Sequence record: PP496444.1
Direction: 5' to 3' (one strand)
DNA: 64,000 nt
Position numbers and translations under genes: made by a program. The notes below the pieces were generated by a model. That model was not told the origin of the DNA and did not search any database. It was given only the letters and a program-made list of their open reading frames with translations. Below, in pieces: positions 32,403 to 45,987 of the stretch (positions are counted from its first letter, which is position 1; each line of letters opens with the position of its first letter).

Positions 32403-32434
32403 GGGTTTACCTTAACACTTCACGGTTTCCACTC

Positions 32435-32466
32435 ATTTACCCGAGACGTACCCGCGTGGGGTAAAT
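32435..32466. promoter_or_regulatory. Back-to-back GTAAATG motifs at a divergent gene junction
   Basis: ATTTAC 32435-32440 (minus, toward the helicase) and GTAAAT 32461-32466 (plus, toward the ligase paralog). Confidence 0.6.
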
Positions 32467-32529
32467 GGGCGTATAGCAATCGAATGCGTGGAATTAGCCC
32501 TGAACGGCGTCCATACTAGCGGAGAACAC

Positions 32530-34008
32530 ATGAAATCTGTAGCCATTGATTACCAAAAGATAGCCAAGGAGTGCCAGTGCACAGAGCTGCCGCCACGGGT
32601 AAGAGTAACCCGTGCACGGGTCTATCCAAACCTGAGGACGTGCCTACTCTATCTCAAGTACGATGCCAAAGGTGAACTGGTGCAAGCCGAGATCACCGCG
32701 CCGTACGACACATCCACCGAGCCAAAGGTGCGTGTGCTCAAACACCCGGACAAGAAGTCGGAGTTCCTTTCATTATATAGGGCGCTGATCCGCCACCAGA
32801 TTATACCGGAGTCGATACCGAAGAAAGGTAACGGCATTGCCCCGACGCTGGAGGTCATCGGTACACTGGTCAGTCTGCTGCCGGGGCGTGACGTTGAAAC
32901 CTTCCGCACGCTGACCCCGGCCATCCAGACCGGTGGTGTCATATACGTGCCACTGGTTACCTCGCGTCCGATGCCGATGGTGCAACACTGGATACCTGTC
33001 AGCCAGCATTCAGAGCTGGGGATGATCGAACTCATTGACACCGACAGCAAGCCTCTACTGAACCAGTGGATCAACAGGTTGAGCAACACGGCCACCGGCT
33101 ATGTGATCTACACGCCGGACGGTTCGCATGCACAGGAACTCCTCTGCTTCCGCGTACCCAACGTGCAAGGTGAGGAACTGTGCGTAGTCAAGAAGGTGGA
33201 CTTCACGCTGACCGTGGCCCGCAGTCTCAAGCCAGTGCTGACCGTATCGACCAAGAGCACGCGTGCCGTGTCCCGCATCCCCCTGCCACATTACCTGATG
33301 CTGCGCAATCACCACATCAAGGTGGGTACCGTGATCTCGCTGCGCCGTAACGACCGGGGCGGGCTGGTGTACCATGAGACGGTAGCGGAGGAAGGCATGA
33401 CACCCTTGCCTCTCTGCCCCTACTGTCACAGCGGATCTGTGCTGCTTCCCGGCAACAACGACGTGTACTGCAAGAACGACTCCTGCCGTGGCCTTGCCAA
33501 CGTGCGCCTGCACTACGTCTTGAACAACAAGCTGGATGTCAAGTACCTGAGCAACACCAAGGTGACAGCGCTGATCAACGACAAGCAGGACCTGTTCACC
33601 CTGCTCAAGACACCGACTCACCTACTGCGACACAGACCGGGCTTCGGTGCACGTACGGTCGATGCACTGGAGAAGAAGCTGGACAGCATTGCAAGTCTTC
33701 CGCTGCATACGCTGGCCGAACTGTCCTGCGCCTTCTACAACGTGGGCGTGCCCCCACTGGATGAGATGGTGTTCAAGAAGATCTTTTCCATCATGTCACT
33801 CGACTACCTGAAAGCGCTGCCGTCCACTGGCAAGATGTACAGTCAGTTGCTCGACATCGAAGGTATCCGCAACAACCGCGCAGTGGCTTTCCTAGCGGGT
33901 TGGCCTGCCTTTCAACAGTGGATGCTAGACCTGGATGCTGCCCTACAATCTCGCAGCGCAGTCTCCACCACGGTAAATAGCCCAAAACAAATTCGAGGTG
34001 TGCAATGA
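32530..34008 (+). CDS. NAD-dependent ligase (LigA) paralog, predicted catalytically inactive
   Basis: LigA-like architecture: LKYDAKGELVQA, YTPDG, OB fold (LKPVL, IKVGT), CPYC..C.N..C zinc finger, HhH (GFGARTV, IEGIR); KxDG replaced by NLRT and TRGDG lost. Confidence 0.7.
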   Translation: MKSVAIDYQKIAKECQCTELPPRVRVTRARVYPNLRTCLLYLKYDAKGELVQAEITAPYDTSTEPKVRVLKHPDKKSEFLSLYRALIRHQIIPESIPKKGNGIAPTLEVIGTLVSLLPGRDVETFRTLTPAIQTGGVIYVPLVTSRPMPMVQHWIPVSQHSELGMIELIDTDSKPLLNQWINRLSNTATGYVIYTPDGSHAQELLCFRVPNVQGEELCVVKKVDFTLTVARSLKPVLTVSTKSTRAVSRIPLPHYLMLRNHHIKVGTVISLRRNDRGGLVYHETVAEEGMTPLPLCPYCHSGSVLLPGNNDVYCKNDSCRGLANVRLHYVLNNKLDVKYLSNTKVTALINDKQDLFTLLKTPTHLLRHRPGFGARTVDALEKKLDSIASLPLHTLAELSCAFYNVGVPPLDEMVFKKIFSIMSLDYLKALPSTGKMYSQLLDIEGIRNNRAVAFLAGWPAFQQWMLDLDAALQSRSAVSTTVNSPKQIRGVQ

Positions 34009-34829
34009 GCAAGAACAAAGGAACACGTACCGCCGTGCTGGTCGGTGGAGGTTTGGACTCCCACGCATACATGGTGTTGAACGCTGATCGAGCGCAGACA
34101 GACTTCATTCATGTGGACTACGGCCAGCGGGTTGCAGTGGCCGAGAGAAACGCCGTGCTGCACATGGCCGAGAAGCTGGGCATTGCCCGCAGTCGTGTGT
34201 ATACGTTGATCTGCGGCAAGACGAACCACATGCGCAAAGTCAACGAAGGCGTCGGCGTGTTGTTCGGCACTGGCCCGGTCGAGATGGACAACGCGTTCGT
34301 GAAAGGACGCAACCTGTTCCTGATTCAGAAGGCCATCGAACTGGGGCATGGTCACGTGCACTTGACGTTGACGCAAGAACGTGGCCGGATGTTCCCCGAT
34401 GCCGATCTGGGATTCGTCCAGCTGGTGGACAATCTGATGCACCGCAGCTACGACGTGAGAGTTACTGCGCCCTACATCATGGAAGACAAGCATCGGGTGA
34501 TGTTCAAGGCGTATCGCCACTGCCCCGAGTTCATCGACATGTCTTTCACGTGCTGGGTCGGCCCTCATGTAGAGTGCGGCATGTGCCCCCACTGCGTCAA
34601 GAAGGAAAAGATTAAAGCCGAGATGGTTATCCAGAAAGCTGAGTACGATCTCAACAAGGATACCCGAGAGGTGCAGTGGGAACAAGTCAAAGCAGGCTAC
34701 GGCAGTGCATTGAAACCAAGCAGTGTTCAAATCTGTGAAGGAATAGCTGCACGTACGGATGAGGCATTAGTTTCATCTCCTATCCGTAGCCCTGATCAGG
34801 CCATGATCAAATCGATCCGAGGTAATTGA
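34005..34829 (+). CDS. QueC-family PP-loop ATP pyrophosphatase, paralog 1
   Basis: VGGGLDS, DYGQR..E, FVKGRNL, FPD..GF, APY...K, TCW...CGMCPHC. Confidence 0.85.
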   Translation: MSKNKGTRTAVLVGGGLDSHAYMVLNADRAQTDFIHVDYGQRVAVAERNAVLHMAEKLGIARSRVYTLICGKTNHMRKVNEGVGVLFGTGPVEMDNAFVKGRNLFLIQKAIELGHGHVHLTLTQERGRMFPDADLGFVQLVDNLMHRSYDVRVTAPYIMEDKHRVMFKAYRHCPEFIDMSFTCWVGPHVECGMCPHCVKKEKIKAEMVIQKAEYDLNKDTREVQWEQVKAGYGSALKPSSVQICEGIAARTDEALVSSPIRSPDQAMIKSIRGN

Positions 34830-34830
34830 C

Positions 34831-35598
34831 ATGAAAAAGTTCGCCAGCTGGTTCAAGCGTCTGCTGAGTAAGAAGCCCAAGTCGATCACGATGACGATGA
34901 CAGACGCCGGTGGCAAGTTGATCACCATTCACATACCACAAGGTGCGGGTGTCGAATACACTCTGTCGAAGTCGGGTACCCACTTGAACGTCTCGGTCAA
35001 GGACGACATCTTCGTACTGAGCACGAACGGTGGTGGAGGTGGTGGGAGCGGCGGTGGTTCCAGGCCTGGTGTCAATGGTGGCCCCGGTCATACGCCCGTG
35101 TATCCGCGCCAAACCGCCCCAGTGGGTGCAGGCGCTCCGAACGCGGGTTGCGCTGGGGATGCACCGAGTGGAGCAGGTGTAACGCCACCAGTGGGCGGAC
35201 AAGCATCGTTTCCTATTGGCGCCCGAGTAACCGTATCAGGTGGTGGCCGGTGTAGTGGTCTGGCGGGTGACGGGCGTGAACGTAAAGAACTCGGGGGTGG
35301 CCCCGGTCCCGACGGAGACAGCTTCGTCGCATCCCCCATTCGCAGTAGTGACCGAGCCTACATGATCCGAGGCTTGTACTACGTCATCACGACCCGCAAG
35401 ATAACAGGCGAGGAATATCCGATCCACGAACTTCTGCACTGGGGCAAGAAGAGCATCGAACTCATGGGCAAGTTCCACACAGTTCGAGATGCTATCGACG
35501 AACTCAAGAAGCAGCTGGGTATCGTGTTAGACGATATTACGGACTATCAGGTTGAATCCATCCCCAAACGCATGTGCAAGCCCCCGCGTAAACCTTGA
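34831..35598 (+). CDS. Gly/Pro-rich hypothetical protein between the two QueC paralogs
   Basis: Basic amphipathic N-terminus, NGGGGGGSGGGS tract, shared VxSPIRSxDxA motif. Confidence 0.7.
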   Translation: MKKFASWFKRLLSKKPKSITMTMTDAGGKLITIHIPQGAGVEYTLSKSGTHLNVSVKDDIFVLSTNGGGGGGSGGGSRPGVNGGPGHTPVYPRQTAPVGAGAPNAGCAGDAPSGAGVTPPVGGQASFPIGARVTVSGGGRCSGLAGDGRERKELGGGPGPDGDSFVASPIRSSDRAYMIRGLYYVITTRKITGEEYPIHELLHWGKKSIELMGKFHTVRDAIDELKKQLGIVLDDITDYQVESIPKRMCKPPRKP

Positions 35599-35636: not shown

Positions 35637-36455
35637 ATGAACGCTACACCGCCAAAGATCCTTATCGCATTCAGCGCTGGCACAGATTCAACGACAGCGG
35701 CCTACTACTACCGAGGTCTTGGGTATCAGGTAACGCTGGCTGTGTTTGACGATGGCCCCTGCAACGACCCGCAGAGCCCATTGTACGATCCGAGCAAGCC
35801 GGAAGACCTGACCAACTTCTCGGATGAGTTCTACGACTACGTGCGACTGCATCAGGATCACACTGCCCGGCACTTGCAGTTCGACTTCGTTGAGATGCGC
35901 TATCCGCAGCTTCCGTTGCTGGAAGCCAACAAGACGGCCAAGCCCGGTCGGGACAACGCAGCGGCAGCAGAGGCTGATGGCTTGGGGTTCTGGGTCGGCT
36001 TCAAAGGCCTGATGGCAATGATGCTGATGAGCCACGGTGCGGCCAACGGCTACGAGGCTGTGGTCTTCGGACACATGCCGTACAACAGCCATTACGAAGA
36101 TGAGCTGCCCCAGAACTTCGAGCTGCTGCGCCAGTACATGGTTACGGCCTACGGTAGCCGGGTAAACATCCCCCACATCTACCACCCGTTCTACCGCCCC
36201 AACTTCGATACCAAAGAAAAGGTTATCCAGCTGGCGTTGAACATCGGTGTGCCCCTGCGAGATACTTATTCGTGCCGCCGAGGTGAAGTGGAAACCCGAG
36301 GCGTTCTCCTGCCACTTCTTCGTGGTGGTAAATCCAGCTATGTGAATCCCACCTACCGCTGGAAGCATTGTGGTACTTGTGAGAACTGTGTCGAACGCAA
36401 GCGAGCCTTCGCGGCGCTGGGCATGAAAGACCCTGCCCCTTATATGGAACATTGA
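35637..36455 (+). CDS. QueC-family PP-loop ATP pyrophosphatase, paralog 2
   Basis: FSAGTDST, YED..PQNF, HPFY..TKEKVI, TYSC..HCGTCENCVERKRAF..G..DP..Y. Confidence 0.85.
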   Translation: MNATPPKILIAFSAGTDSTTAAYYYRGLGYQVTLAVFDDGPCNDPQSPLYDPSKPEDLTNFSDEFYDYVRLHQDHTARHLQFDFVEMRYPQLPLLEANKTAKPGRDNAAAAEADGLGFWVGFKGLMAMMLMSHGAANGYEAVVFGHMPYNSHYEDELPQNFELLRQYMVTAYGSRVNIPHIYHPFYRPNFDTKEKVIQLALNIGVPLRDTYSCRRGEVETRGVLLPLLRGGKSSYVNPTYRWKHCGTCENCVERKRAFAALGMKDPAPYMEH

Positions 36456-39619: not shown

Positions 39620-41704
39620 ATGAAATCCGTGAACCCCATCTTCAAGCACGTTCCCCAGTTCGACTGGCCTGTCATTCCGCGTGCACAGTGGGAAGAGATC
39701 ATCAAGGGCAAAGAGCACGTGATGTTCGACTCTTTCTCGCAACTCGCCCAGGTGCTGGCTATCCCGGCGAGCAGTTACCAGTTCTACTTTGAAGATGGGT
39801 CCACGTTGTTCGCTGGTCCCGAAGCAACCTTCACCGCCGCCCCGTATCCGTTGTATCAGGATCTGGAATTCGTGCTGACCCCCGACGAGACGTTGGTACC
39901 CGGTCTTGCACTGGATACCAAACCGTGGGGCCTGTACACCGATGAATGGGTGGACAAGTACGAAGGTGAGGACAAGGGAGACCTTGATCACAAGACCGGG
40001 TTTGAGTTCATCCCGTTGCCAGACGCCTTGAAACTGGTAACCCTCAACCCGGAGACCATGCAGCTCCAGTACACCGCCATCGAGAGCTTCACGTACGACG
40101 GCGTGACCTACGTATACCTGCTGGCTGATGGCGTGTGCTGGGTACTGGCGGGCAAGTCCGGTGGTCTGGTTGCCAGCGAGCAGGACAAAGGCGCAGCGTA
40201 CATCATGGTGTCTCATCCCGAGTTCGGCGGGTGCAGCGTAGACAACATGTACGCCAGCGAGTTCGGTGAAGAAGACGCGACGTTCTACGTCCAAGACGAG
40301 GAACACAACTACCTGGACGCGGCTAACCGTATCTTCGAGGAAGCCAAGGGGGTAGGTGCTGGTACGTTCCTGACCATCGAGACCGGTGATGGACTGCCGA
40401 CGGCACTGGCCTACAACCTGCGGCACAGTGATGTGTCCCATGTTAACCTGCCGATGCACAACATCCACCAGTTCACCGTGTTGCACGAGAAGCTGGGTGA
40501 GACTCCTAACTTCTCCGATGCGCCGGAAGCGTGCCGCATGAAAGAGGTGATGGAGTATCTGGCGGACCCTGAGTCCCCGGTAGACCATTACTGGTCGGCC
40601 ATCATGGTGCTGGAGAAGAACTTCCCCGGCTTCGCGGAAGCGTTGAAAGACTCCAGCGTCCCGACCCGCGACATCGTGCACTCCAAACAGGCATTCAGCT
40701 TGGAGATCGATCGTCAGTTCGGCAAGGAAGTGGCGAGCAAGATCGGTCTGAACACTGGCGTCTTCGCCCAAGTAAAAGACCGCGATGAGTGGCTGGCGAT
40801 CAAAGACAAGTTCCCTACGCCTTTTGTGGCCGTCAAGTACAACACCAAACACTTCATCGGTATCTTCGACAAGGAAGAGGTGGCGAAGTCCATCAATATG
40901 TGGCTGGCCGGTCAACCCGGAGAGTCGCTGATGATCGAAGAGTACTTCGGTGAAGGCAATCAGGAATTCAACCTGTGCTACGTGATCAACGAAGAGTTCG
41001 TGCAGCCGATGCTGTTCCTGTGCGAAGTCAACAAGATCCTCGGCAATGACACCGGTGGCAAAGGCGGCAACACACTGGCCTGCCATGATGCCCGCATCGA
41101 GAAGTACCCGGAGGCCTTCGAGCCGGTCAACGCTGCGCTGGCTCATCTGCATGAACACGTGGAAGGTGTGAAGGGCTGGGTTGATCTGAGCTTCATGGTC
41201 CGAGACGGCGTCCCGTACTTCACAGAGTGGTGCATCCGCATCGGCTGCTCCAACAACGCCACCATCGTGCGCCAGATGGAAACGCCGCTTAACATCCTGC
41301 TGACTAACCTGACCAACAAAGAATACACCGACGTGAGCTGGAAGCATTCGATGTCTGTTAGCGTGGACATCTACAGCATGCCGCTGTCCGCAGGCAACGA
41401 TGCCAACATGCAGTTCACAGACTCGCTGACCAACCCGGTGCAGATGGTGTCGCCACTCAATCTGGAACTGGCCGCTGAGAGTTTCTTCGACCCGATTGAC
41501 TCGGCCTGGAACGCGGTGTTCGATGGTTACATCGTCGAGGCTTACAACCGCTACGGCACCGTCTCGGGCTACTCCACCAACTGGCAGTTCGCCTGCAGCG
41601 CGGCTTATAACCACTTGAAAGATCAGTCGGTGTTGTACGGAGCGTACCGTGATGCGCCTGTTCACCACGACCCACTGACTCTGTTCCCTTTCCTCAAGGC
41701 GTAA
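39620..41704 (+). CDS. PurD(GARS)-like ATP-grasp ligase with a ~300-aa N-terminal extension
   Basis: LEIDRQFGKEV..KIGL, IEEYF.G.EF, NKILGNDTGGKGGN, GWVDLSFMV..G.PYFTEWCIRIG parallel PurD motifs. Confidence 0.7.
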   Translation: MKSVNPIFKHVPQFDWPVIPRAQWEEIIKGKEHVMFDSFSQLAQVLAIPASSYQFYFEDGSTLFAGPEATFTAAPYPLYQDLEFVLTPDETLVPGLALDTKPWGLYTDEWVDKYEGEDKGDLDHKTGFEFIPLPDALKLVTLNPETMQLQYTAIESFTYDGVTYVYLLADGVCWVLAGKSGGLVASEQDKGAAYIMVSHPEFGGCSVDNMYASEFGEEDATFYVQDEEHNYLDAANRIFEEAKGVGAGTFLTIETGDGLPTALAYNLRHSDVSHVNLPMHNIHQFTVLHEKLGETPNFSDAPEACRMKEVMEYLADPESPVDHYWSAIMVLEKNFPGFAEALKDSSVPTRDIVHSKQAFSLEIDRQFGKEVASKIGLNTGVFAQVKDRDEWLAIKDKFPTPFVAVKYNTKHFIGIFDKEEVAKSINMWLAGQPGESLMIEEYFGEGNQEFNLCYVINEEFVQPMLFLCEVNKILGNDTGGKGGNTLACHDARIEKYPEAFEPVNAALAHLHEHVEGVKGWVDLSFMVRDGVPYFTEWCIRIGCSNNATIVRQMETPLNILLTNLTNKEYTDVSWKHSMSVSVDIYSMPLSAGNDANMQFTDSLTNPVQMVSPLNLELAAESFFDPIDSAWNAVFDGYIVEAYNRYGTVSGYSTNWQFACSAAYNHLKDQSVLYGAYRDAPVHHDPLTLFPFLKA

Positions 41705-41707
41705 TCC

Positions 41708-42871
41708 ATGAGCACTCCATTCCAACAGTTCACCCTAGATGAGTGGATTCGCTACATGCGAGGCGAATCCACTATCTGGCGTATGTACGCCGACGATCAT
41801 CCCGACAGGGTTGAGTTCAGCCCGGTATGGCGTGACGAGATGTACCGGTTGATGGTGCAGTTCAAAGAACTGCTGCCGATGTCGTTCTCCAATCCGGTGT
41901 ACGGCTTCACCGAAGGCTTTTTTGAAGGGTTTGGACTCCAGCCCTTCTACGGCGATGATCCGTTCAATCCGATGGTTCAACCTCTAAGCCACCCTTTGGT
42001 GCACGTGGGCTTCCCGCTCACGCTGGACGAGATGGCATCAAGCATGAAGGACTGGCAGTCCCTGAGCGATCACCTGGGGCGTCCGCAGCTGGTCGATACA
42101 TTCGAGCCGGTTCCGTTGCTATCGCGCAACCTGTACGAGCCTAACGCGTTGCTGACCGTACGGAACAAGGAAGAGATCGTGATGAACGGAGGCTGGTCCA
42201 GTAGATACTTCCTCTGGCTGAACAGTCCGATCACCGAACTCAAAGGTAACTTCGACATTTATCTGGCCAGCCTGACCAAGAAGCGCCGCTACAAAGTGAA
42301 ACAGGCACTGGCGACGGTCGGCACTGAAGAAAACCCGGCTATCAGTGTCAGTACCGGCAAAGGTTTCGGTTACAGTGAGCTGGCAGATCAAGTAGACAGC
42401 ATCCTCGCGACATTTGAAGATCCAGTGGACATCGAGTGCATGCTTCTTCAGCTGCTGTTCGGCGTAGCAACCTGTCACACGCACCCTCATCTGGTCGATA
42501 TCGTTTATGCAGATGAGCAGTTGGGGATCTTCATCAAGCGCAACGGCCACACGATGAACTTCCTCTACAACCGCGACCCGGACAACCGCGCTGATTCAGG
42601 CATCAACCTGCTGACCCAGTACGTGCGCCACTTGCACGAGAACGGCCCGGCAGACATTGCCTACGTGGACCCGACATGTCGATATCGGCCTGACGAGGAC
42701 AGTATGAACACCTACAAGCGGGTGATCACCAACGAGAACCGGTATCACCCAATGCCATTCGTCTCGGCTGACCCTGCGCATATCGAAGGTGTGCTAACCC
42801 CGGCGTTCATTGCGGGTATCTGGCAGCTGGATGCGACCAACGGCCCGGCCAATCCTGAGATGATGGAGTAA
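41708..42871 (+). CDS. Fem/BioF2-like GNAT 4
   Basis: FDIYLASLTKKRRYKVKQA (Acetyltransf_6-type signature); C-terminal YVD...TYKRV. Confidence 0.6.
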   Translation: MSTPFQQFTLDEWIRYMRGESTIWRMYADDHPDRVEFSPVWRDEMYRLMVQFKELLPMSFSNPVYGFTEGFFEGFGLQPFYGDDPFNPMVQPLSHPLVHVGFPLTLDEMASSMKDWQSLSDHLGRPQLVDTFEPVPLLSRNLYEPNALLTVRNKEEIVMNGGWSSRYFLWLNSPITELKGNFDIYLASLTKKRRYKVKQALATVGTEENPAISVSTGKGFGYSELADQVDSILATFEDPVDIECMLLQLLFGVATCHTHPHLVDIVYADEQLGIFIKRNGHTMNFLYNRDPDNRADSGINLLTQYVRHLHENGPADIAYVDPTCRYRPDEDSMNTYKRVITNENRYHPMPFVSADPAHIEGVLTPAFIAGIWQLDATNGPANPEMME

Positions 42872-44751: not shown

Positions 44752-45987
44752 ATGAGCGTTATCATCCCCACCGTAGCGGCAGACAGTGGTCAGCACGACA
44801 TGATCATTCAAGGTTGTTCCACTGGTCGCGTCTCTATGGCTGAGCCTAACGAGGGCTCCAAACCCAAGTCGTCCAAGAAGCTGTACGAACGCGAAGACCT
44901 TATGGCGTACGACAGCGAGTCGGAACACTGGCAGAAGCAGTTGGCCCGCCGCTACGCCCACCACGGTGAGATGGCTGGCGTGCTGAACAACGTCGAGGTG
45001 GTGCCGGAAGCCACCTACCAGAACTTCGACATGAAGATCACCCCGTACACCGCGCAGTTGATGGACCAGAACGATCCCAACTGCCCGATCCGTCTGCAGT
45101 ACATGCCGACCAACAAAGAGCTAGAGTCGATTCAGCGCGAAGAGACCATGCACAACGAACTGGGCGAGGAAGAAGACACCATCCCCGGTACCTCGGTAGT
45201 GCATCGCTATCCGCGTCGTGTCTTGTTCCTGACCACTACCCAGTGCGCCAGCTTTTGCCGTTACTGCACCCGTGCACGTATCGTCTCCCATGGCGGCGAA
45301 GCAGCGATCACCAAGAAGCACCTGGATGCCAGCATCGACTACATCGCGGGCAACAAGGACATCGAAGACGTGCTGCTGTCCGGCGGTGACCCGTTCATCC
45401 TCCCAGACAACAAGCTTGACGAGATCCTCGGTCGTATCCGCGCCGAAGCACCTCACGTTCGCTTCCTGCGTATCGGTAGCCGACTGCCGGTCCAGATGCC
45501 AACCCGTATCACTCCAGAGCTGTGCGAGATTCTGGAACGCCACAACGTCAACATGGTCAACATCCATGTGAACCATCCGAAAGAGGTAACTCCTCTGCTG
45601 GCGTCCCGGTTGAAGATGCTGCGCAAAGCGGGCATCATGCTGGGCAATCAGGCCGTCATGCTGAAAGGTGTGAACGACTCCATCGAGGTGATGACCGAGC
45701 TGTGCTTGCGCATGGTCGAGATGGGCGTGCGTCCGTACTACGTCTACTCCAACGATCCGGTGGCACAGGCTGCACACTTCACCGTGTCGCTGAAAGAGAT
45801 GTTGGACATCAACGAAGGCATGCGTGGCTTCCTGTCTGGCCCGGCGATGCCCCTGTTTATCTGTGACGGAATCGGCGGCCTTGGAAAACTTCCTGTCCAG
45901 AACGACTACGTCAAGGTTAACGACTCCGGTGAAATCTGGGGCCGTAACTACGAGGGTTTGACTACCCGAATGAAGCATCTGGAATAA
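44752..45987 (+). CDS. kamA: Lysine 2,3-aminomutase (radical SAM, PLP-dependent)
   Basis: HRYP.RVL, CASFCRYCTR, LLSGGDP, SRLPV..P.RIT, HVNHPKE, NQAVMLKGVND, PYYVYSND, DGIGGLGK (PLP lysine). Confidence 0.93.
   Translation: MSVIIPTVAADSGQHDMIIQGCSTGRVSMAEPNEGSKPKSSKKLYEREDLMAYDSESEHWQKQLARRYAHHGEMAGVLNNVEVVPEATYQNFDMKITPYTAQLMDQNDPNCPIRLQYMPTNKELESIQREETMHNELGEEEDTIPGTSVVHRYPRRVLFLTTTQCASFCRYCTRARIVSHGGEAAITKKHLDASIDYIAGNKDIEDVLLSGGDPFILPDNKLDEILGRIRAEAPHVRFLRIGSRLPVQMPTRITPELCEILERHNVNMVNIHVNHPKEVTPLLASRLKMLRKAGIMLGNQAVMLKGVNDSIEVMTELCLRMVEMGVRPYYVYSNDPVAQAAHFTVSLKEMLDINEGMRGFLSGPAMPLFICDGIGGLGKLPVQNDYVKVNDSGEIWGRNYEGLTTRMKHLE

Follow-up and report, generated by a model that had tools for sequence, protein, structure and literature searches.

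A very likely catalytically dead, DNA-binding derivative of LigA encoded beside QueC-like genes in the jumbo Pseudomonas phage vB_PpuM-Peetri

The middle domain of the poxvirus A20 protein is an inactive DNA ligase, made up of a catalytic subdomain and an OB fold, that works as a scaffold (PMC11142717). Like A20 and A22, the monkeypox counterpart of vaccinia A20, the product of the phage gene Peetri_00182 (hereafter the pseudo-ligase) combines a ligase catalytic subdomain and an OB fold without the catalytic residues; the partners of A20 are the polymerase and uracil-DNA glycosylase, whereas those of the pseudo-ligase are partners that we infer. A20 is not known to have counterparts of the zinc-finger and helix-hairpin-helix (HhH) parts of the ligase clamp, which the phage protein keeps. 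Two A22 chains (8k8s_C and 8k8u_C) match the pseudo-ligase in structure at Z 8.1–8.7, mostly over the OB fold, and no sequence match to A20 or A22 was found. Another described relative is the PR1 heterodimeric (split) NAD+-ligase (9i5i, 9hu3), a phage LigA variant with rearranged domains that is matched both by profile and by structure. According to its entry titles, the PR1 ligase consists of two chains and was solved on nicked DNA, whereas the pseudo-ligase carries all the DNA-binding domains, and an apparently dead active site, on one chain. As for its genomic surroundings, Peetri resembles the phages with DpdA-dependent 7-deazaguanine systems (PMC6884629, PMC10516641) in its FolE, QueE-like and QueC-like genes, to which the related Vibrio phages add ArcS-core genes. 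Unlike in those systems, the 233 annotated features of Peetri include no DpdA, TGT or QueD, the QueC-like proteins fall far below the equivalog cut-off, and the cluster has ATP-grasp, KamA-like and possibly FemAB/GNAT-like enzymes in addition. In a text search, the word 'ligase' does not occur in either of the two papers on deazaguanine systems (PMC6884629, PMC10516641).

The window analysed here is a stretch of 64,000 nucleotides from the record of the jumbo Pseudomonas phage vB_PpuM-Peetri (PP496444.1), whose host, P. putida KT2440, is a laboratory strain. Peetri_00182, annotated as hypothetical, occupies positions 32530–34008 of the plus strand and encodes a LigA-derived protein of 492 amino acids. 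The open frame of 492 codons described in the first-pass annotation is real and corresponds to this gene, with an ATG at 32530, the start also given in the record, and a stop codon at 34006–34008. A GGAG Shine-Dalgarno sequence (32521–32524, plus strand), which lies 5 nt before the ATG, makes this start preferable to an upstream GTG at 32488. Searches of Pfam and PHROG with the protein return no significant match, the best in Pfam being ZBD (E 0.68).

Domain layout and active site

True LigAs are found by phmmer among 1.8 billion representatives at E-values of 1e-7 to 4e-4, collinear over residues 215–465 of the pseudo-ligase. When the profile of the pseudo-ligase family is aligned with that of LigA (hhalign), the match has a probability of 99.8% (E 1e-29) and places residues 1–463 on LigA columns 77–546; against PDB LigA chains, the family profile reaches an E-value of 7e-16. 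Significant sequence homology spans residues 137–463, the robust core of the alignment beginning at residue 137. A Foldseek comparison with LigA, which the first-pass annotation had proposed as a check, matches the Peetri_00182 model to LigA structures with E-values between 1e-17 and 1e-15, and VIA-align superposes model residues 212–472 on residues 316–580 of E. coli LigA on nicked DNA (2owo), with a Z of 18.3 and an rmsd of 3.8 Å over 250 residues.

The order of domains is that of LigA (adenylation-like, OB, Cys4 zinc finger, HhH), without domain Ia and BRCT. The degenerate adenylation (NTase)-like domain (residues 1–214; 32530–33171, plus strand) is short and very divergent. Over this domain hhalign reaches LigA columns 77–297; tested alone, the N-terminal part shows weak homology, with a P of about 0.01 in the correct register, and none of 120 column shuffles attains its score. 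An AF2 run on a 21-row alignment resolved the C-terminal half only, single-sequence AF2 being unusable (pLDDT 37), and the adenylation-like domain is predicted at pLDDT 30–59 even though that alignment contains LigA rows; because of those rows, the NTase-like shape of the N-terminal model is no independent evidence. Atlas feature matches for the N-terminal domain fall in DNA_ligase_aden clusters (score 0.80), a lead only.

The OB-fold domain (residues 215–290; 33172–33399, plus strand) is present, at pLDDT of about 80–86, and is followed by a Cys4 zinc finger (residues 296–319; 33415–33486, plus strand), the cysteines of which (C296, C299, C314 and C319) align with C408, C411, C426 and C432 of E. 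coli LigA and are invariant both in the pseudo-ligase family and in the LigAs compared. The HhH domain (residues 320–478; 33487–33963, plus strand) holds apparent counterparts of the four LigA HhH motifs. Its fold and the four segments can be seen, with the hairpin glycine at one position of the four, G373 (E. coli G489), and S341, D411 and R447 at those of E. coli G455, G521 and G553. Together with R333/T334, the last three glycines are positions that we take to be DNA contacts in E. coli LigA, and Peetri carries S, D and R in place of the glycines and V/A in place of R333/T334, differences that count against a LigA-like grip on DNA. The OB, zinc-finger and HhH modules of LigA encircle duplex DNA, and their retention in the phage protein, as claimed in the first-pass annotation, is supported by sequence and model. 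The lack of BRCT was also rightly noted, since the protein stops 14 residues past the HhH domain and nothing in it pairs with the BRCT columns of the LigA rows. Its description as full-length does not hold: besides the shortness and divergence of the adenylation-like domain, domain Ia is gone, the alignment opening at LigA column 77 with some 30 residues before the motif I remnant, and a Pfam search finding no Nlig-Ia match in Peetri_00182.

In the active site, the P-K-x-D-G of motif I is replaced by P33-N34-L35-R36-T37-C38 (32626–32643, plus strand), a reading already made from the sequence and borne out by three independent alignments (hhalign, MAFFT, and MAFFT with E. coli LigA), all of which place P33-N34-L35-R36-T37 under P-K-x-D-G. 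The reported loss of TRGDG is likewise seen, with ITAPYD aligned beneath it and T56 in place of its Arg. From E. coli to Peetri, the MAFFT alignment gives K115 to N34, D117 to R36, G118 to T37, R136 to T56, E173 to T112, D285 to T189 and K290 to Y194; relative to LigA, the pseudo-ligase hence replaces the Lys, Asp and Gly of motif I, the Arg of TRGDG, the Glu of motif III and the Asp and Lys of motif IV, and of these seven positions only K290 varies among the 11 LigAs compared. The motif I lysine is missing from every known member of the family, its four lineages carrying N, G, G and N there, and the motif III region is wholly deleted in three lineages.

The protein might still be an enzyme, either a ligase or nucleotidyl transferase working through a different lysine or the bearer of a new catalytic activity on DNA. 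The N-terminal domain is constrained like the rest of the protein (dN/dS 0.06), three lineages, those of the Vibrio and metagenomic members only, retain the motif V lysine, which is an Arg (R208) in Peetri, and one alignment displays an invariant Lys at position 174. Against this, seven catalytic or nucleotide-contacting positions are replaced together, the motif III region is deleted in three lineages, D60 and K174 are the only invariant polar residues of the N-terminal domain across the four lineages, with K174 placed inconsistently between alignments, and TIGR00575, the LigA equivalog model, scores 29.4 bits against a cut-off of 444. Domain Ia, which LigA needs in order to react with NAD+, is absent as well. 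We therefore regard retained enzymatic activity as highly improbable, and consider it very likely that Peetri_00182 is a catalytically dead, DNA-binding derivative of LigA.

The retained clamp architecture and the basic character of the protein (pI 9.3) would also be in keeping with a nick-binding protector that caps nicks or ends, or with an anti-defence decoy that occupies a host sensor responding to ligase, NAD or nicked DNA. With the NMN-binding domain Ia and the nucleotide-contacting residues lost, a decoy role based on NAD or NMN is unlikely. Nick termini in LigA are reportedly contacted largely by the adenylation domain, as the paper on the 2owo structure is said to describe, and it is this domain that is remodelled in Peetri_00182. 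Host prophages strongly restrict this phage group (10.1101/2024.03.26.586772), which speaks for a role in counter-defence; against it, PADLOC gives no match for the pseudo-ligase, and a stand-alone decoy has no evident reason for the linkage to QueC-like genes described below. Protection of nicks or deception of host sensors consequently appears improbable.

Ancestry and selection

Peetri also encodes a canonical NAD-dependent ligase, Peetri_00141. The normal ligA that the first-pass annotation placed at 1–1017 is indeed present (minus strand) with KLDG intact, the window holding only its first 339 codons before the gene, of 659 codons in full, runs off the end. Canonical LigA is kept as well in all 11 cultured genomes that carry the pseudo-ligase. 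The term paralog, applied earlier to Peetri_00182, is a loose one: BLASTP against the phage's own LigA gives an E-value of 0.02 only, and that LigA is without the zinc-finger cysteines. In a phylogenetic tree, the pseudo-ligases form one group (support 100/98) separate from the LigAs of the same phages, and the two groups have an identical branching order. A recent duplicate of the phage ligA is ruled out by the BLASTP result, the missing zinc finger and the separate groups in the tree. A split ligase completed by Peetri_00046, a 159-aa 'DNA ligase', was likewise rejected, Peetri_00046 having no Pfam domain.

Four lineages of the pseudo-ligase family are known, those of the P. putida phages, two Vibrio phages and one metagenomic contig, and they share only 22–25% identity. 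A tblastn search of 50,697 phage records finds the pseudo-ligase in just 11 genomes, and neither word-index searches nor IMG/VR scans return further members. As judged from the sequences, the family is a single old lineage, distinct from the active LigA of these phages, and its retention predates the split between the Pseudomonas and Vibrio phage lineages. The Vibrio phage copies carry the annotation 'ligA, DNA ligase', a label that is very probably wrong.

Across nine phages the frame is intact in every case, with a dN/dS of 0.06–0.07 at a dS of about 0.6. By domain, dN/dS amounts to 0.06 in the N-terminal domain, 0.009 in the OB fold, the strongest constraint in the protein, and 0.11 in the HhH domain, while the adjoining second QueC-like gene lies at 0.07–0.09. 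The dN/dS comparison advised in the first-pass annotation thus reveals strong purifying selection, the dead N-terminal domain included, and this excludes the neutral decay that the same annotation had raised. Given this constraint, the frame of 492 codons preserved in nine of nine phages and the homologues kept in Vibrio phages and a metagenomic contig, the probability of a decaying pseudogene or annotation artefact is negligible, even if the lack of a significant Pfam or PHROG match and the hypothetical label could be read in that way.

The neighbouring gene cluster and its transcription

The stop codon of the pseudo-ligase gene overlaps the start of the first QueC-like gene in an ATGA at 34005–34008 (plus strand), as first reported. 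The overlap is kept in nine P. putida phages, its 4 nt also being found in the annotations of eight of eight sister phages, and this arrangement of sequence is compatible with translational coupling of the two genes. Both QueC-like PP-loop ATPases (QueC-1, 34005–34829; QueC-2, 35637–36455; plus strand) lie far under the QueC equivalog cut-off, QueC-1 with 61.8 bits against 150.3. The pseudo-ligase gene is directly upstream of two QueC-like genes in four of four lineages; the linkage persists in the Vibrio phages, where a gene with DUF5591, the phage-type ArcS core domain (PMC10516641), comes between the pseudo-ligase gene and the QueC pair. The same strand of Peetri encodes a 694-aa protein with a PurD-like ATP-grasp domain (39620–41704), present in the same 11 cultured genomes as the pseudo-ligase, a 387-aa protein (41708–42871) with homologues in Vibrio phage GR11A and metagenomic clusters, and a KamA-like radical-SAM aminomutase (44752–45987). 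A FemAB/GNAT-like acyl or aminoacyl transferase is a possible identity for the 387-aa protein, offered as a lead only. Peetri also has FolE and QueE-like genes. Most of the dark cluster proteins have no Pfam or NCBIfam match, and profile searches of PDB sequences with four cluster protein families returned nothing.

A divergent UvrD-like helicase gene adjoins the pseudo-ligase gene, with RNase H and topoisomerase II close by, and synteny extends in these phages over the whole stretch from the helicase to topoisomerase II. An identical distribution over 11 genomes is seen for the pseudo-ligase, the 694-aa protein and the helicase. Co-occurrence with the QueC/KamA cluster, another check proposed at first pass, is hence real in that the genes are linked in all four lineages, but it is confounded by the helicase: with identical distributions, shared ancestry explains the co-occurrence as well as shared function does, and the common distribution and synteny imply that adjacency may be inherited rather than functional. 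A search for related cultured phages without the pseudo-ligase or the cluster found none, and the identically distributed helicase leaves no contrast of joint loss among cultured phages.

The divergent promoter-like element at 32434–32467 is built on a perfect 9-nt inverted repeat, with arms CATTTACCC (32434–32442) and GGGTAAATG (32459–32467) that direct one GTAAAT toward the helicase gene and one toward the pseudo-ligase gene. The GTAAAT motif originally assigned to the latter is real (32461–32466) and forms part of a recurrent promoter-like motif: GTAAAT occurs 23 times in the window, and 7 of these copies fall 26–44 nt upstream of the first ATG of a same-strand open reading frame of 100 aa or more, where chance would give about 0.8. 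The operon that the gene was earlier said to head has internal promoter-like copies of GTAAAT, before QueC-1 and QueC-2, which counts against a functional tie to these genes. No terminator-like sites were found on the plus strand between the pseudo-ligase and the following genes in Peetri. A look for public sequencing runs, as a source of expression evidence, found none listed.

These surroundings could also call to mind a replisome or repair scaffold resembling A20/A22 and unrelated to base modification. Such a scaffold would link proteins of replication or repair to one another on DNA, with the polymerase, the clamp, RNase H, the UvrD-like helicase and LigA as candidate partners, possibly taking hold of nicks or Okazaki junctions and passing them on. 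The gene sits at the junction of the replication block, with topoisomerase II and RNase H nearby and beside the helicase gene, which has the promoter-like motif in mirror copy; an inactive ligase scaffold is, moreover, documented in the A20 middle domain (PMC11142717), with A22 chains among the structural matches. The pseudo-ligase gene is, however, co-oriented with the QueC-like genes, which it overlaps or closely abuts, and divergent from the helicase; its linkage to the QueC pair survives the insertion of the ArcS-core gene in Vibrio phages, and the A22 matches cover mainly a common OB fold, by which homology is not established. A scaffold of this kind is the main rival to the explanation favoured below, though rather unlikely in our judgement.

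Proposed role and its implications

Of the roles first proposed for the pseudo-ligase, the delivery of modification enzymes to DNA fits the context best. The best explanation overall, which we hold tentatively and at slightly less than an even chance, is that the protein binds DNA without catalysis and acts as an adaptor, probably for a module that modifies DNA with 7-deazaguanines or amino acids. The link of the pseudo-ligase to DNA modification is one that we infer from these data; that the module is its partner is plausible, if somewhat doubtful, and DNA modification in Peetri is itself a candidate suggested by gene content.

In the adaptor model, an ancestral NAD-dependent DNA ligase would have lost catalysis long ago and been retained as a non-enzymatic DNA binder. 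The pseudo-ligase would clamp phage DNA, with or without a preference for nicks, while its remodelled N-terminal domain would serve as a protein-interaction surface. This surface may hold or position the products of the downstream genes, namely the two QueC-like PP-loop ATPases, the ArcS-core enzyme in Vibrio phages, the ATP-grasp ligase, the possible FemAB/GNAT-like transferase and the KamA-like aminomutase. Together with FolE and the QueE-like protein, the cluster enzymes could plausibly synthesise and then elaborate a base of the 7-deazaguanine type in DNA. In a more specific version of the model, which we deem unlikely in its full detail, the dead ligase would be the subunit that engages DNA in a hypermodification system of the 7-deazaguanine type without a recognisable DpdA. 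There it would present duplex to QueC-like and amino-acid-adding enzymes, and the product would be a base that bears an amino acid such as beta-lysine.

The pseudo-ligase family offers a case of a phage replication enzyme turned pseudoenzyme, stripped of its catalytic residues yet still equipped with the DNA clamp, and always encoded next to the same enzymes. If the pseudo-ligase does target base-modifying enzymes, it would fill a gap in deazaguanine-type modification without a recognisable DpdA, and the presentation of duplex by a clamp would constitute a new way of targeting such enzymes to DNA. A new hypermodified base would be a further implication of the link to modification, if true.

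LigA ancestry and active site of Peetri_00182

Peetri_00182, labelled a hypothetical protein in GenBank, is encoded by the 200-kb P. putida myovirus vB_PpuM-Peetri (Peetri below), a member of a published Estonian phage collection (10.1101/2024.03.26.586772), of which the window spans bases 124001–188000 (PP496444.1). Its frame of 492 codons runs on the plus strand from an ATG at 32530, preceded by GGAG at 32521–32524, to a stop at 34006–34008 that shares an ATGA with the start of QueC-1 (34005–34829), the overlap described in the first-pass annotation, and the product is basic (pI 9.3). The normal ligA reported elsewhere in the genome is also present: positions 1–1017, on the minus strand, encode the first 339 residues, with KLDG intact, of a 659-codon gene truncated by the window edge, in whose product Pfam detects only adenylation and OB domains.

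Peetri_00182 itself matches Pfam only through a ZBD at E 0.68 and has no match in PHROGs. Phmmer, run exhaustively against 1.8 billion representatives, returned 13 matches; all full-length matches scanned with Pfam are true LigAs (adenylation, OB, HhH, and BRCT), collinear with residues 215–465 at E 1e-7 to 4e-4. A profile of five family sequences aligned with one of 11 LigAs over residues 1–463 and LigA columns 77–546 (probability 99.8%, E 1e-29), with a robust core under changed match-state settings of 137–463 against LigA 205–549 (E 8e-27), and matched crystallised LigAs at E 7e-16. AlphaFold2, run on a 21-row alignment, modelled residues 215–478 confidently (pLDDT about 80–88) and residues 1–213 poorly. 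LigA structures rank first in Foldseek searches with this model (E 1e-17 to 1e-15), and VIA-align superimposes residues 212–472 on the OB, zinc finger, and HhH modules (316–580) of E. coli LigA bound to nicked DNA-adenylate (Z 18.3, rmsd 3.8 Å over 250 residues). Sequence and model both confirm that these modules have been kept, as first proposed, and all four zinc-finger cysteines are invariant across the family and the LigAs.

The active site was mapped by adding E. coli LigA (MG1655) to the alignment of the family with the 11 LigAs, among which every mapped position other than K290 is invariant. The motif I residues K115, D117, and G118 correspond to N34, R36, and T37 in Peetri, to G, L, and G in Vibrio phage vB_VcorM_GR11A, to G, S, and G in Vibrio phage GR7B, and to N, G, and G in a metagenomic contig. 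R136 of TRGDG becomes T56 (A in the three divergent members), E173 of motif III becomes T112 (deleted in all three), D285 and K290 of motif IV become T189 and Y194 (K and V in GR11A, K and A in GR7B, Y and F in the metagenome), and K314 of motif V becomes R208 (K in all three). K115 is the motif I lysine by sequence, consistent with the title of PDB 5tt5; the roles of D117, G118, R136, E173, D285, K290, and K314 follow the general LigA literature. The predicted loss of the motif I lysine and of TRGDG is thereby borne out, as is the absence of BRCT in both the profile and MAFFT alignments; domain Ia is missing as well. Together with a score of 29 bits against the 444 required by the NCBI LigA equivalog model, these losses therefore place this LigA-derived protein outside the ligases by sequence criteria.

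The reading of residues 1–214 as a degenerate adenylation domain is weaker, with support that is consistent between methods. The robust core, starting at residue 137, already takes in its motif IV and V part. The N-terminal part on its own aligns residues 1–53 with LigA columns 77–130, in the correct collinear position (P about 0.01; none of 120 column shuffles equalled the real score), and MAFFT independently reproduces this register. Language-model features place residues 1–215 among DNA_ligase_aden clusters (score 0.80, a lead only), and the NTase-like shape of the AlphaFold2 model is not independent evidence, because its alignment contained LigA rows.

Selection and ancestry of the pseudo-ligase family

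The 492-codon frame is intact in all nine P. putida phages of the Peetri group, and pairwise dN/dS between Peetri and the other eight is 0.06–0.07 at dS of about 0.6, ruling out the neutral decay of a dying gene that the first-pass annotation had put up for checking. By domain, dN/dS is 0.06 (N-terminal), 0.009 (OB), 0.04 (zinc finger), and 0.11 (HhH), with relaxation confined to the last 14 residues (0.6). The nearby QueC-2 gene (35637–36455) yields 0.07–0.09, and the dead domain is therefore as constrained as a neighbouring enzyme. This constraint operates within the lineage; between lineages the N-terminal domain retains almost no invariant polar residues.

Besides the nine near-identical phages, the family comprises three divergent members (GR11A, GR7B, and the metagenomic contig), 22–25% identical to the Peetri protein, and none of the searches made recovered more. 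A canonical LigA occupies a separate locus in all 11 cultured genomes. Those examined (Peetri, L010:2039–4018, numbered, like all L entries, within a sequence extract; GR11A and GR7B, L020:247–2160 and L021:250–2148) contain just one or two cysteines each and lack CxxC, and so lack a zinc finger; the pseudo-ligases retain theirs. In an unrooted OB-to-HhH tree the pseudo-ligases group together (100/98), apart from the LigAs of the phages themselves (100/99), and internal branching is identical in both groups, which places a single inactivation before the divergence of these phage lineages. Nor is the protein a recent duplicate of the ligA resident in the same genome, which narrows the earlier description of a paralog.

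GenBank labels the GR11A and GR7B pseudo-ligases "ligA, DNA ligase" (L011:10001–11314, L015:14001–15323) despite the lack of a motif I lysine, and both genomes hold a real LigA at another locus. A small ORF (147–161 aa, no match) overlaps the start of both genes and is absent in Peetri. Peetri_00046 (159 aa; PP496444.1 40598–41077, L017), outside the window, is annotated "DNA ligase", matches only a 67-position PHROG through residues 97–151, has no Pfam domain, and lies near DHFR and HD-domain deoxynucleotidase genes; elsewhere the genome encodes a long homologue of thymidylate synthase (365 aa) as well as a dUTPase_2-type pyrophosphohydrolase.

Gene neighbourhood

In all four lineages the pseudo-ligase is the first gene on its strand beyond a divergently oriented UvrD-like helicase and is followed by two QueC-like PP-loop ATPase genes; in the Vibrio and metagenomic copies a DHFR gene separates it from the helicase. 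The pseudo-ligase and the QueC-like pair are the constant core of a cluster that otherwise differs by lineage. The Vibrio phages interpose a gene for a protein with DUF5591, the domain that forms the catalytic core of phage-type ArcS (PMC10516641); Peetri encodes a PurD-like ATP-grasp protein and a KamA-like radical-SAM aminomutase further downstream. Outside the window, its genome carries genes for a QueE-like radical-SAM protein (192054–193025; L022:16655–17626) and for GTP cyclohydrolase I, a firm identification (194991–195731; L022:19592–20332), both close to the DNA polymerase and distant from the QueC-like pair; no DpdA/TGT or QueD is annotated among the 233 Peetri features, a negative at the level of annotation. 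Together these genes likely specify a 7-deazapurine pathway, and the amide-forming enzymes suggest further decoration. The proposed association with the QueC/KamA cluster holds as linkage to the QueC-like pair in every lineage; the pseudo-ligase, the 694-aa ATP-grasp protein of the cluster (39620–41704, plus strand), and the helicase occur in the same 11 genomes among 50,697 phage records, no related phage having one without the others, so that co-occurrence leaves function and ancestry inseparable.

A glycine-rich ORF without database match (34831–35598, plus strand; length varying from 711 to 768 nt among the nine sister phages) separates the QueC-like genes and has no equivalent at that position in the Vibrio or metagenomic clusters. 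A 387-aa cluster protein (41708–42871, plus strand; L013:9559–11851) has a D-P-T-C ... Y-K motif invariant in five homologues, is tandemly duplicated in the metagenomic contig, and shows FemAB/GNAT (Acetyltransf_6)-like language-model features (0.94, a lead).

GTAAAT, often (G)GTAAAT(A/G)G, occurs 23 times in the window (e.g., at 33973, 35603, 38487, 39583, 46052, 48988, and 62071), almost everywhere on the strand of local genes. Seven copies precede a first ATG by 26–44 nt, where chance alone would give about 0.8, and a perfect 9-nt inverted pair with GTAAAT lies between the divergent helicase and pseudo-ligase genes (32434–32467). The element is probably a phage promoter component.

A candidate adaptor built on a ligase clamp

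The sequence comparisons support a non-catalytic DNA-binding protein that uses the clamp parts of LigA, for which an adaptor is the most economical role. The clamp would hold DNA, and the remodelled N-terminal domain would hold partner proteins; the QueC-like or ArcS enzymes are the partners suggested by the close, co-oriented arrangement of the genes and by the ATGA overlap. The main rival reading is of a scaffold for the replisome or for repair, with no connection to base modification. In the poxvirus polymerase holoenzyme, the middle domain of A20 is an inactive DNA ligase with a scaffolding role (PMC11142717), a precedent for the adaptor that also supports this rival. No phage pseudo-ligase turned up in the literature searched, nor did any ligase-like component of deazaguanine systems. 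Ligase-derived scaffolds are already known as a kind, from which Peetri_00182 would differ in stemming from LigA and retaining the complete DNA clamp.
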